From assembly GCF_052425735.1 (NCBI RefSeq), contig NC_135758.1:806001-870000 (forward strand): a stretch of DNA of 64,000 nt, in the 5' to 3' direction. This document shows positions 18,825 through 21,800 of the stretch, in pieces. The position numbers were made by a program, and so were the translations under genes. A model generated the notes under the pieces. The model made no database searches. It saw nothing but the letters and a program-made list of their open reading frames with translations, and was not told the origin of the DNA. This DNA comes from Oculina patagonica. Lineage: Eukaryota. The first letter of the stretch is position 1, and every line of letters starts with the position of its first letter.

Positions 18825-21800
18825 AGAGCAAACAAATGTTACATTTATATGAAGTGAAATTGAATGTTTTACATGTAAGAATGTTTTTCTTTATGCCATT
18901 TTTTGTTTTTCATTTGCATATCCTAACGATTAAATTTGCAATGGTAATACAACTGAGTGGATTTTAATTCAGCAAGTATTTAATTAAATCAGTTGAGTGG
19001 AGCCCGTAGAATAAGAGTGATTACAACAGGACGTCGCTACTTTAAACTCCCCATTTTTTCAAACAAAAGATATTTTCCTTGGACGTGGTAGTATTTTTGC
19101 AGTCATTTACTGTAAAAAAGGGAACTAAACCAAGTGCAACCCCGCTATATTTTATTTAAGCCTCGCTTTCTTGACCTGCGATAACAAAAGAATGAGTTTT
19201 TTAAAACATTAAAAACGTTTTATCTCAGGCAAAATCAATTATCACAATGTACAGTTAATATCGCATACTGTATTGGAGACCGTGCGAACTTCGTTGTTTG
19301 TAACAGCTCCTGATTTGAACTCTGCGACTTTATAGTAATTTCTCAAACTCATTAATAATTCATCAAGTTTAAACAAAGAAAATTATAACCGTGACGTTGG
19401 TTTAGAAACCCGATCTTAATTAGCATAGATTTTTACGATTTTATTTCTCCGTTTACTCCGTAGTTTTTGTTTCGATTGAGAAGATATATCAAACACTCGA
19501 GACAGTGTTTCATCGGCTATCCAAACACCTCGAATTTCGTCAAAAATACTCCGCTGCGCGTCGTATTTTCAACTCTCTTCTCGGTGTTTGGATATCCCGA
19601 TGAAACACTGCCTCTCGTGTTTGATATATTACTTAACCTATTCAAGTGTAATTTACACCCAAATAGGGAAGACACGAGAATTAGCTATTGTTATACTGTA
19701 CTGCTTCAATATATTTCTCAGAGGCGGCGGAGCGTTTTGAAACGGGGGGGGGGGGGGGGTGGGACTCGTCGTACACCAAGCCAAGCTTCACCTCCCCCCC
19801 CCCCCCGGGGGGGCGCATACCCCTACTTATATTTCTCAAAATGTCTTTTGCGAAGTTGACTCCTTTGCAATCTCAACCGGTGTGTCCGTAATCGATTTGT
19901 GACAATGCATTACTAGGCAGTTCAGACGATCCTGCCTTATGGTGCTTTTTGGGTATTTTGTTAGTCGTCGAAGGGCAGAAAGGGGCACTAAATTGTATGA
20001 CACGACGAAGACCAAATGCTGGCGGGGTTTTGTGTGACGACATCAAATTTTACAAAATGTAAAAACAAAACGGTTGATTCTATGAAGTGCTTCTTTGTCG
20101 ATATAATGGAATTGGATTTGAGTCGTTGAAAGTTTTCGTAACATTACTCGTGAAATGGTGAATATATGACAAACTTATGTATGTTATATATACTTTTATT
20201 AAATTTTCAGCCACGGATATTGCATTTCTAGCATTCTGATTGGTTCACTCAATCCCGGTTGTCAGCTCGTATACCTTAGTTTGACCTTATTTGGAAAATG
20301 ATTGCGTTACTGTTGCCAAACTAAAATTTTTCTGCGGGAAGCGACAGTTCCATTAAACAAATGGTTTTGAACAGCAAATTTGGCGAGCTTTATGAACAAG
20401 AAATAATTAGCGGTGCCTACAAAAACCAAAGAAATGCCATAGTAAATTAAACTACGCAAAACAAAAGGATAGTTGCGAAAAGTGTAATTAATAATACTTT
20501 TAAACTGAACGCACAGCAAGAGCGAGTGAATAAAGTAGAAAAGCAGCAAATAATTTAAGAAAGAACGGCAAACTGACACAGTTTCATTCAGTGTACGTCA
20601 TAAAACTAGGCTCAGCACTTCAGTAAAGTTGGTTACCTTTCAATCTTGGTTTTGTCCTTTCATACTTTAATAAACCTGTTCCACTTTGAGCTCAATTTCG
20701 CTTCAAATAATATAGCAGTCTTGATGACAGCCGTGGAGCCGTAAAGAAGTACAATGTAAACACTTGCTTCGTTCGACTTGCACAAGACTTGTAGTTTCCA
20801 GAAAAGGTTTTGCTTCGGATCTTCTCGTAAATCTTAACTGTTGTCACAATTTCCAGGATATTTAGACGACTTTAGAGGGGATTGTTTGAGGAAAATCTTC
20901 TAAAGAAAACTCTCTTGCTCGCTTTCCTCGTATGTTTCATTCAACTCAAGAAGTGAACACCGCGCCAGAAATTTTCGCGCCTCTTCATACTATCACTTCG
21001 TTTACATCAAAATGAAATGTCCATTCGATTTTAACTTGGGAAGAATTTAATAAAACAATTATTCCATTCGCCCTTGTTGGATACGAGTCGTTATAGCCAA
21101 CTCGGCGCTTCGCGCCTCGTTGGCTATTTACCACCTCGTATCCAACGCGGACTCATGGAATAATTAACAATTATTGGATGAGGTTGAGCATGATAGCGAT
21201 AATTATCAAGGCCAAAGTTTCTGTTATCTGCCGAAGCCGAAGGCTGAGGCGGATAACAGAAACTGAGGCCTTGATAATTATCGCTATCATGCGAAAACCG
21301 AATCCAATAATTGTTTTTTTATGCACATCCCTGAGCTGCACTTGTAAAGACAAGAGCGCGCATAAAACTATTGTCTGTAGGTATGACGTCACTTCTACAT
21401 ATGAAAAATCTAATGTCTGTAGGTATGACGTAAGAGAAACAGCAAGCAAGAATTAGCTGCGTGCTTATAGCCAATCAAAATCAAGCTGGTGACACCAATG
21501 TATAATAATTGTTAATTATATAGCCACAAGTGTTTTATTGGAAAATAGACCACTCGTGAAATTCATATGAAACTGCATTTATTACAAACAAATATGTCTC
21601 CCGGGCGTTAAAATAAAAAAGGGACAAACCAACGCCGGATTAACTTTGAAAACTGTACAGCCTAACAGATTTTCAAAACCCATATCGCAATCTGTTAAAA
21701 TCTTCTTCAATTTTTGTCCATCCGTACCTTCTTTTCTATTTGCTGCGTTATTGAAATGTTCCACTCGATTTATTTCACTCAATTTGGTGGCCATTTTCTT

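Follow-up and report, generated by a model that had tools for sequence, protein, structure and literature searches.

What kind of element is marked by long, imperfect palindromes that have different arms and a common, strand-specific tip? This question is raised by a stretch of 64,000 nucleotides from the genome of the coral Oculina patagonica (NCBI RefSeq assembly GCF_052425735.1, contig NC_135758.1, positions 806,001 to 870,000 of the forward strand), referred to here as the window and numbered from its first letter. Four palindromes of this kind, which belong to elements termed A, B, C, and D, are probably the terminal hairpin modules of non-autonomous deletion derivatives, resembling miniature inverted-repeat transposable elements (MITEs), of CryptonA-type transposons, the mobile elements of this type being those that encode a tyrosine recombinase (YR). 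Moreover, the G·A mismatches and GNA triloops that recur on one strand of these hairpins suggest that such Cryptons may work through folded DNA.

A Strand-Specific Apex in Four Hairpins

A strict apex pattern (a 3-bp stem, GA, a 3-6 bp stem, a GNA triloop, and then the returning stem, GA, and stem) was scanned against both strands of the window and matched at four places and no others, these being the hairpins of elements A-D:

21166..21315, forward strand: hairpin of element A, 150 nt, apex GCC-GA-AGCC-GAA-GGCT-GA-GGC at 21230-21250
21055..21165, reverse strand: hairpin of element B, apex AAC-GA-GGCGC-GAA-GCGCC-GA-GTT at 21099-21121
19484..19629, reverse strand: hairpin of element C, apex TAC-GA-CGC-GCA-GCG-GA-GTA at 19547-19565
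53408..53595, reverse strand: hairpin of element D, 188 nt, apex CCC-GA-GAAGC-GAA-GCTTC-GA-GGG at 53490-53512

All four apex strings lie at the places and on the strands given in a preliminary description of this DNA. In the window, four occurrences are observed against an expectation of ~0.01 (mean 0.01 and maximum 1 in 200 first-order Markov simulations of the window). A relaxed scan that allowed any 2x2 mismatch and any triloop returned 28 matches in the window, and the 24 of these that lie beyond A-D are AT-rich or tandem-repeat sequences.

The arms of the palindromes had initially been called unrelated. No blastn similarity was detected among them, to which extent the term is apt; it is overstated, however, since termini and design are shared between elements. 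The terminus AACAATTATT is common to elements A and B, elements D and E start with (A)ACAAT, and TAGCCRAC-GA-GGC is common to elements B, E, and F, where E and F denote two further copies in the window:

16419..16521, forward strand: element E, whose decayed hairpin has ACAATTATCC/GGATAATTGT as its termini, with GCCGAC-GA-GG...CC-GA-GTCGGC on either side of a degraded apex
4295..4370, forward strand: element F, decayed and related to E (~76% identity), with TAGCCAAC-GAG-GC left as a remnant of the apex region

Of three places at which decayed versions of the motif had been proposed, these two are plausible and are related to each other, and element E still holds GA/GA next to its degraded apex. 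The third, at 6328-6526, is not accepted as a member of the class, as it has 13/22 purines, no GA/GA, mixed mismatches, and a 15-nt loop. This 199-nt palindrome belongs to another family of repeats, for which L046, L007, L003, and L021 contain relatives.

Hairpin Families and a Purine Code along the Stem

The hairpins of elements A and B, together with a hairpin (L001) that lies beside a G-protein-coupled receptor (GPCR) orthologue in another coral assembly, all begin AACAATTATT-N4-GA. A search pattern built from this start, in which the termini and the basal GA loop are fixed, had a single match in the window and none in shuffles; it was found in at least 120 metagenome contigs and was absent from viral contigs. 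The metagenome contigs with the pattern carry animal genes (GPCR, immunoglobulin, ankyrin) and are probably coral. This abundance of copies upholds the earlier assignment of the hairpins to a class of mobile elements. Five families were distinguished among the matches, including fam0 (the type of element B), fam1 (the type of element A), and fam2 (the type of L001). It should be noted that GPCR orthologues in the window and in L001 are both followed by hairpins, and that these hairpins represent independent insertions, orthology between them having been rejected.

When the hairpins of A-D are folded as DNA, the mismatches in their arms are nearly all tandem 5'-GA/5'-GA purine pairs, located on the same strand as the apex, with GA/GAA, AA/GA, and GAGA/GAAA as near variants. 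The internal loops of the element A hairpin (GA/GA, GA/GAA, AA/GA, and GA/GA) consist of purines throughout, and those of the element C hairpin comprise three GA/GA loops plus GA/G and GAGA/GAAA. Overall, purines on the apex strand account for 78/85 unpaired internal-loop bases (A, 17/17; C, 25/27; B, 18/20; D, 18/21), as compared to ~50% in other palindromes of the window, where single-base mismatches are found. The complementary strand of the GA hairpins bears TC/TC mismatches. The effect at the apex is stronger than the preliminary description had it, in that the code extends along the whole stem. A tandem GA that stands opposite another GA indicates that these interruptions are not the product of random palindrome decay.

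The same code was quantified in 89 GA-class hairpins, with all positions that the search pattern forces excluded from the counts. Here, GA/GA makes up 122 of 153 unforced 2x2 loops (80%) and AG/AG none, while 1x1 loops predominate in the other palindromes used for comparison. Further, among hairpins collected independently of the search pattern, an extreme bias toward purines accompanies the GNA triloop (9/12 vs 4/48). Both C-GNA-G triloops (GCGAAGC-type) and tandem G·A pairs of the sheared type are known signs of a stable DNA fold.

Covariation and Selection on Hairpin Structure

The proposal that structure rather than sequence is conserved is supported by the families, in which the stems show covariation and the GA loops are retained as such. 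Among the 26 distinct sequences of fam2, double compensatory changes are present in 17/44 stem pairs. Paired cells amount to 97.8% vs 88.2% in shuffled alignments and the covariation score is 0.287 vs 0.116, with 0/500 shuffles reaching either observed value, and slid controls of the alignment collapse. Families fam0 and fam1 behave like fam2. GA positions are 0.85-1.0 conserved, and purines constitute 83-97% of bases at unforced unpaired positions. Covariation of the stems implies that pairing between the two arms is needed at some stage. The hairpin code is kept by selection.

Link to a Tyrosine Recombinase

Long copies with a linked open reading frame (ORF), a search for which had been proposed, exist in the form of ~2-kb relatives of element B that carry the same hairpin and encode a DUF3504/Phage_integrase YR. 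Among the enzymes named as possible partners at the outset (YR, HUH, and DDE), the tyrosine recombinase is the one that was found. The seed of this comparison was an ORF in L016 that matches Phage_integrase and DUF3504 and lies 360 nt from a fam0 hairpin, on the opposite strand; with six homologous loci (L123-L128), it gives the seven YR loci compared here. Five proteins score 35-57 bits with DUF3504 (PF12012; Pfam cut-off 29.7), and scores with Phage_integrase reach 37.6 and 37.8 bits (cut-off 27.1). Proteins P0079, P0092, P0144, P0102, and P0091 retain GRRGRE..., HLTNHCLRATSV, and TGHKS...ESY (R...HxxR...H...Y), and the R-H-R-H-Y catalytic positions are apparently intact in these autonomous relatives.

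A GA hairpin is located 260-600 nt downstream of the YR stop codon in 5/7 loci (L016, L123, L124, L125, and L128), and in each of these five the YR gene runs antisense to the GA strand. Between L123 and L124, the alignment extends for ~2.0 kb, starting at the hairpin and ending at an inverted repeat at the far end (IR-R), and a single YR ORF lies inside. Fragments of reverse transcriptase in L124 lie outside the aligned element, and neither a reverse transcriptase nor a second transposase is present within it, unlike in DIRS/Ngaro. In the autonomous ~2.0-kb element, the body consists of one YR gene in antisense orientation, whose promoter lies at the far end; this promoter region, which is equivalent to the end of the element A tail, contains ATGCAAAT, ATTGG, and TATA-like motifs.

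Other, shorter copies are similar to L123 or L125 at both ends. In the window, the element B hairpin is 88-91% identical to hairpins of YR-encoding Cryptons in other coral assemblies; relative to L124, its hairpin is 90% and its far (promoter) end 84% identical, the promoter-end block at 20196-20350 being homologous to L124:3522-3678. Judged by this homology, element B is a deletion derivative of a ~2.0-kb Crypton. Among the window copies, homology to a YR element at both ends is seen for B, and elements A, C, and D are tied to the class by shared design rather than by a YR partner of the same family.

The hairpins of four loci (L124:5437-5550, L123, L128:4211-4337, and L016:83-199) are 93-96% identical, as compared to 72-80% nucleotide identity among the YR ORFs. 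Since identity of the hairpin exceeds that of the ORF, constraint on the hairpin is stronger than on the gene. L125 represents a diverged YR family (58% amino-acid identity) with other arms, and keeps the AACAAT start, two GA/GA loops, and the GAA cap.

Several other ORFs were considered as partners and rejected. Ten large ORFs adjoining metagenome hairpins are host or unrelated sequences (GPCR, CHB_HEX, N-acetyltransferase, leucine-rich repeat, and long interspersed nuclear element-like), and a 632-aa ORF at 33944-35842 of the window is HECT-like and part of another transposon. A recombinase ORF was not found in or around the hairpins at 19400-21500 or to the left of element D, where only a RING-finger fragment was recovered.

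Architecture of the Full Elements

The palindromes do not make up entire elements: the hairpin turns out to be just the terminal module of a longer, asymmetric element. In flank-inclusive alignments, every family has, on the GA strand, a 5' hairpin, an inverted repeat of 15-19 nt directly after it (IR-L), a body of 200-270 nt, and a 3' IR-R. Hairpin length ranges from 105 to 190 nt across elements, and the family bodies hold ATTGG/CCAAT motifs and TGACGT(CA), the cyclic AMP response element (CRE). Relatedness among the families is seen in their termini and in this overall layout. The full elements in the window are as follows:

21166..21508, forward strand: full non-autonomous element A, ~343 bp, consisting of the hairpin and a 193-nt tail
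20196..21165, reverse strand: full element B, ~970 bp, with IR-L at ~21030-21054 beside the hairpin and IR-R at 20196-20208
19337..19634, reverse strand: full element C, ~295 bp, consisting of the hairpin and a tail
53076..53595, reverse strand: full element D, ~520 bp, with IR-L CTTTATTGTTCACCATTAAATT directly after the hairpin and IR-R at 53076-53095

The IR-L/IR-R pair seen in the families is likewise present in elements B and D. The tail of element A contains two copies of TGTCTGTAGGTATGACGT, one TGACGTCA motif, and CCAAT boxes, and ends in ...CAATGTATAATAA; more specifically, 18-nt direct repeats with TGACGT are located at 21375-21392 and 21415-21432, and two CCAAT boxes and a terminal TATAATAA at 21459-21500. 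A second copy of element A on the same chromosome (L002:14316-14713) is similar to it from AACAATTATT (21166) to ...CAATGTATAATAA (21508), and fam1 copies from other corals have the same ends as element A. The family of element C is also present in contigs L022 and L046 at 86-88% identity, with the apex retained, and relatives of element D were identified in L053, L071, and L072. When whole elements are folded as single-stranded DNA (ssDNA), the 3' end pairs immediately after the base of the hairpin in 7/8 cases, such that the two ends meet as a nicked duplex.

A 5' terminus of AACAAT is common to families with otherwise different arms (window positions 21166, 21165 on the reverse strand, 53595 on the reverse strand, and 16419; L125:5582 on the reverse strand). 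AACAAT is the core of the SOX/high-mobility-group (HMG)-box motif, and one idea prompted by this terminus is that a host HMG-box factor could be a candidate binder of the hairpin base.

Insertion Sites and Flanks

Elements A and B adjoin each other in the window, and the boundary between them records a nested insertion:

21159..21165 (left) and 21504-21510 (right), forward strand: AATAATT direct repeat flanking element A

Element A is nested three bases inside the terminus of B, between the two AATAATT copies. The first three bases of B (GTT on the forward strand) were displaced to 21511-21513 by the insertion of A, and deletion of A plus one AATAATT copy restores the B terminus GGAATAATTGTT. 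The AATAATT repeats around A are compatible with the short terminal direct repeats described for Cryptons (PMC3212892).

Alignments of the flanks of 26 fam1 and 26 fam0 copies bear out the earlier remark that no target-site duplications (TSDs) are evident, as the 3' flanks are variable and a TSD is absent. The 5' flank ends in ...TA in 24/26 fam1 copies and is AT(A/T)TT in fam0, and these 5' flanks resemble the element's own 3' end, GTATAATAA (..ATAATA) and GAATATT (..ATATT), respectively. The two ends of the element (AACAATTATT... and ...GTATAATAA) are not inverted repeats of one another. An assignment to terminal inverted repeat (TIR) MITEs of a DDE cut-and-paste transposon was rejected on these grounds, namely the lack of a fixed-length TSD in the 26 fam1 and 26 fam0 copies and termini that are not inverted repeats.

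At L088:694-841 and the adjoining copy, two fam0 elements stand head to tail with the junction ...GGTGAATATT-T-AACAATTATT..., a form that a circle junction or a tandem integration would be expected to leave.

A Possible Mechanism and Its Alternatives

How might such elements move? We tentatively consider it possible that animal CryptonA moves via folded single-stranded DNA, with the coded hairpin picking the strand, IR-L serving as a splint, and the YR closing and integrating the nicked duplex. The use of folded ssDNA or of a cruciform by the recombinase is an inference. In this scheme, one strand would fold best, owing to its sheared-type GA/GA interruptions and C-GNA-G cap, and the recombinase, possibly with a host factor, would recognize the hairpin in its folded state, either as ssDNA or in the form of an extruded cruciform. 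The G·A marks would select the strand or the arm, much like the extrahelical bases of integron attC. The 3' arm of the hairpin and IR-L might then act as a splint that joins the element ends in a nicked duplex (...TAATAA|AACAAT...) for circle formation, and integration would come next, into AT-rich sites that resemble the arm at the hairpin base (AATAATT-like). The fact that the GA strand is not the mRNA strand argues against a role in mRNA and supports a reading at the level of DNA.

Several observations count against Crypton ends that function through folded DNA. None of the window copies (A-D) encodes a recombinase, all are non-autonomous, and no autonomous copy is present in the window. 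Among the seven YR loci, L127 has only a decayed hairpin and L126 is without a detectable one. The metagenome copies do not represent independent events, as they were selected by the pattern and share ancestry within families. Tyrosine recombinases normally act on duplex DNA. Additionally, the GA strand is favored by just 0.1-4.9 kcal/mol when generic DNA nearest-neighbour energies are applied, and because this gap is small, the asymmetry between strands rests on the sequence pattern together with published G·A/GNA thermodynamics.

Part of this evidence could be accommodated if the hairpin acted only as duplex or cruciform DNA, with arms that are arrays of sites for the recombinase or a host factor, GA/GA interruptions that break the symmetry for the sake of directionality and palindrome stability, and no free ssDNA. 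The typical binding site of a YR is a pair of inverted arms separated by a 6-8 bp spacer (Kojima & Jurka 2011, PMC3212892). The hairpin base and IR-L form AATAAT-TGTTTT-ATTAT, which is core-site-like, and both strands of the hairpins fold with very negative z-scores. Nonetheless, we regard this as rather unlikely: any mismatch would break the symmetry, yet 80% of 2x2 loops are GA/GA, AG/AG does not occur, and the cap is GNA, a combination of GA/GA and GNA that is known as the most stable in folded DNA. Stem covariation also demands that the arms pair with one another at some stage.

The remaining alternatives replace either the enzyme or the nucleic acid. The ends of Helitron and IS608 have features that are echoed here (a one-strand hairpin close to one end, one or more conserved 5'-flank bases, and no TSD), and an HUH/rolling-circle enzyme (Helitron/Helentron-like or IS200/IS605-like) might on this basis mobilize the elements, with the YR as a passenger or resolvase. 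This is very improbable given that the ~2.0-kb autonomous copies contain only the YR ORF and no Rep/helicase, that the ends differ from 5'-TC...CTRR-3', and that, judged from both of their ends, the short copies arose from YR elements by deletion; an identity as Helitron or Helentron was itself rejected based on the ends and on the YR as sole ORF. It is also highly doubtful that the hairpin works as RNA, be it as a hairpin in an antisense transcript, a small-RNA precursor, or a 3'-end signal. In favor of this, promoter-like CCAAT, CRE, and TATA motifs are present in the tails, and tandem GA pairs are stable in RNA too, where they occur in many motifs. Against it, the YR gene runs antisense to the GA strand at each of the five loci, and its mRNA would thus bear UC/UC mismatches; Rfam at the gathering threshold returned zero matches across the whole window; and C-GNA-G triloops are a hallmark of DNA, not RNA. 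Terminal hairpins of non-autonomous Crypton derivatives remain the preferred interpretation of the four palindromes.

Other Features of the Window

The window has a composition of ~38% G+C and contains intronless 7tm_1 receptor genes in a cluster, along with fragments of Penelope and further transposons. Exact-protein look-ups of the window GPCR and of an IS3EU-type transposase found none on record. A MITE at 26718-26854 that served as a control (137 bp) has fully (100%) complementary arms of 56 nt and an 8-bp TSD (GACTTAAA), is without the GA code, and is positioned between two tandem GPCR paralogues; it is probably a very recent hAT-type insertion. A large fold-back element at 7413-7762, with arms of ~21-nt GGCTAACCGGAGTG-type subrepeats and an AAG apex, is of a class that differs from the GA hairpins. 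Lastly, inverted homopolymer runs (G15 ... C14, then G7) surround a 35-nt spacer at 19745-19812, between elements C and B.

Comparison with Known Systems

Crypton-derived genes of vertebrates include ZMYM2-4, QRICH1, and KIAA1958, and Crypton DNA transposons are reportedly the subject of a paper by Goodwin from 2003. To the best of our knowledge, no class of eukaryotic DNA transposons is less well understood than Cryptons, for which there is no transposition assay and whose ends have been described as featureless. CryptonA is defined as DUF3504-encoding (Glomhopper paper 2026, PMC13465315). The coral elements share with it a single YR gene, DUF3504 and Phage_integrase, the R-H-R-H-Y motifs, a size of ~2 kb, and an animal host, along with an apparent lack of a staggered-cut TSD and of classic TIRs, and a resemblance between one flank and the opposite end of the element that may correspond to the short identity of Cryptons. 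Unlike CryptonA as described, they have a strand-coded terminal hairpin of 105-190 nt whose conservation exceeds that of the gene, a pair of repeats (IR-L and IR-R), and abundant MITE-like derivatives. Cryptons have been described without terminal structures except direct repeats of 4-6 bp, and the word "hairpin" is found in neither of two papers (PMC3212892, PMC13465315). Literature searches on G·A/GNA hairpins in transposons and on Crypton hairpins likewise found no description. The strand-coded hairpin is a concrete candidate for the recognition element of Cryptons, and offers a way to annotate Crypton-derived, MITE-like repeats that are currently unclassified.

The coral elements resemble fold-back and TIR MITEs in being short, abundant, non-coding, and palindromic, and Helitrons in having no TSD and a hairpin near one end. 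They differ from these groups in that they have no TSD (as opposed to MITEs), a palindrome at one end only, asymmetric termini, and a partner that encodes a YR rather than DDE or Rep/Hel. The tip of the hairpin has its closest likeness in extra-stable DNA mini-hairpins of the type d(GCGAAGC), which are said to come from the work of Hirao and colleagues. The exact GCGAAGC is present in elements B and D, with GCGCAGC in C and CCGAAGG in A, and the tandem 5'-GA/3'-AG of the coral hairpins is the stable sheared arrangement of the known mini-hairpin motifs. GCGAAGC and sheared G·A are biophysical motifs that have been studied in phage origins and oligonucleotides; we know of no case in which they form a recurring code in the ends of eukaryotic transposons.

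In overall logic, the hairpins are most similar to integron attC and CTXphi attP(+), the folded single-stranded substrates of IntI and XerCD, respectively. Like these, they conserve structure over sequence, form an imperfect hairpin with strand-specific unpaired marks, and are associated with a tyrosine recombinase and no target duplication. Unlike them, the coral elements are not bacterial, their marks are tandem G·A rather than extrahelical bases, and their enzymes are only distantly related; the ssDNA substrate has been proven experimentally for attC and CTXphi, and is hypothetical for the coral elements. The comparison yields a testable hypothesis, namely that a eukaryotic tyrosine recombinase uses folded DNA, and a recombinase that proved to be hairpin-specific could be of interest as a recombination tool. 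If true, the hypothesis would give integron attC and CTXphi recombination a counterpart in eukaryotes and provide a first mechanistic handle on Crypton transposition.

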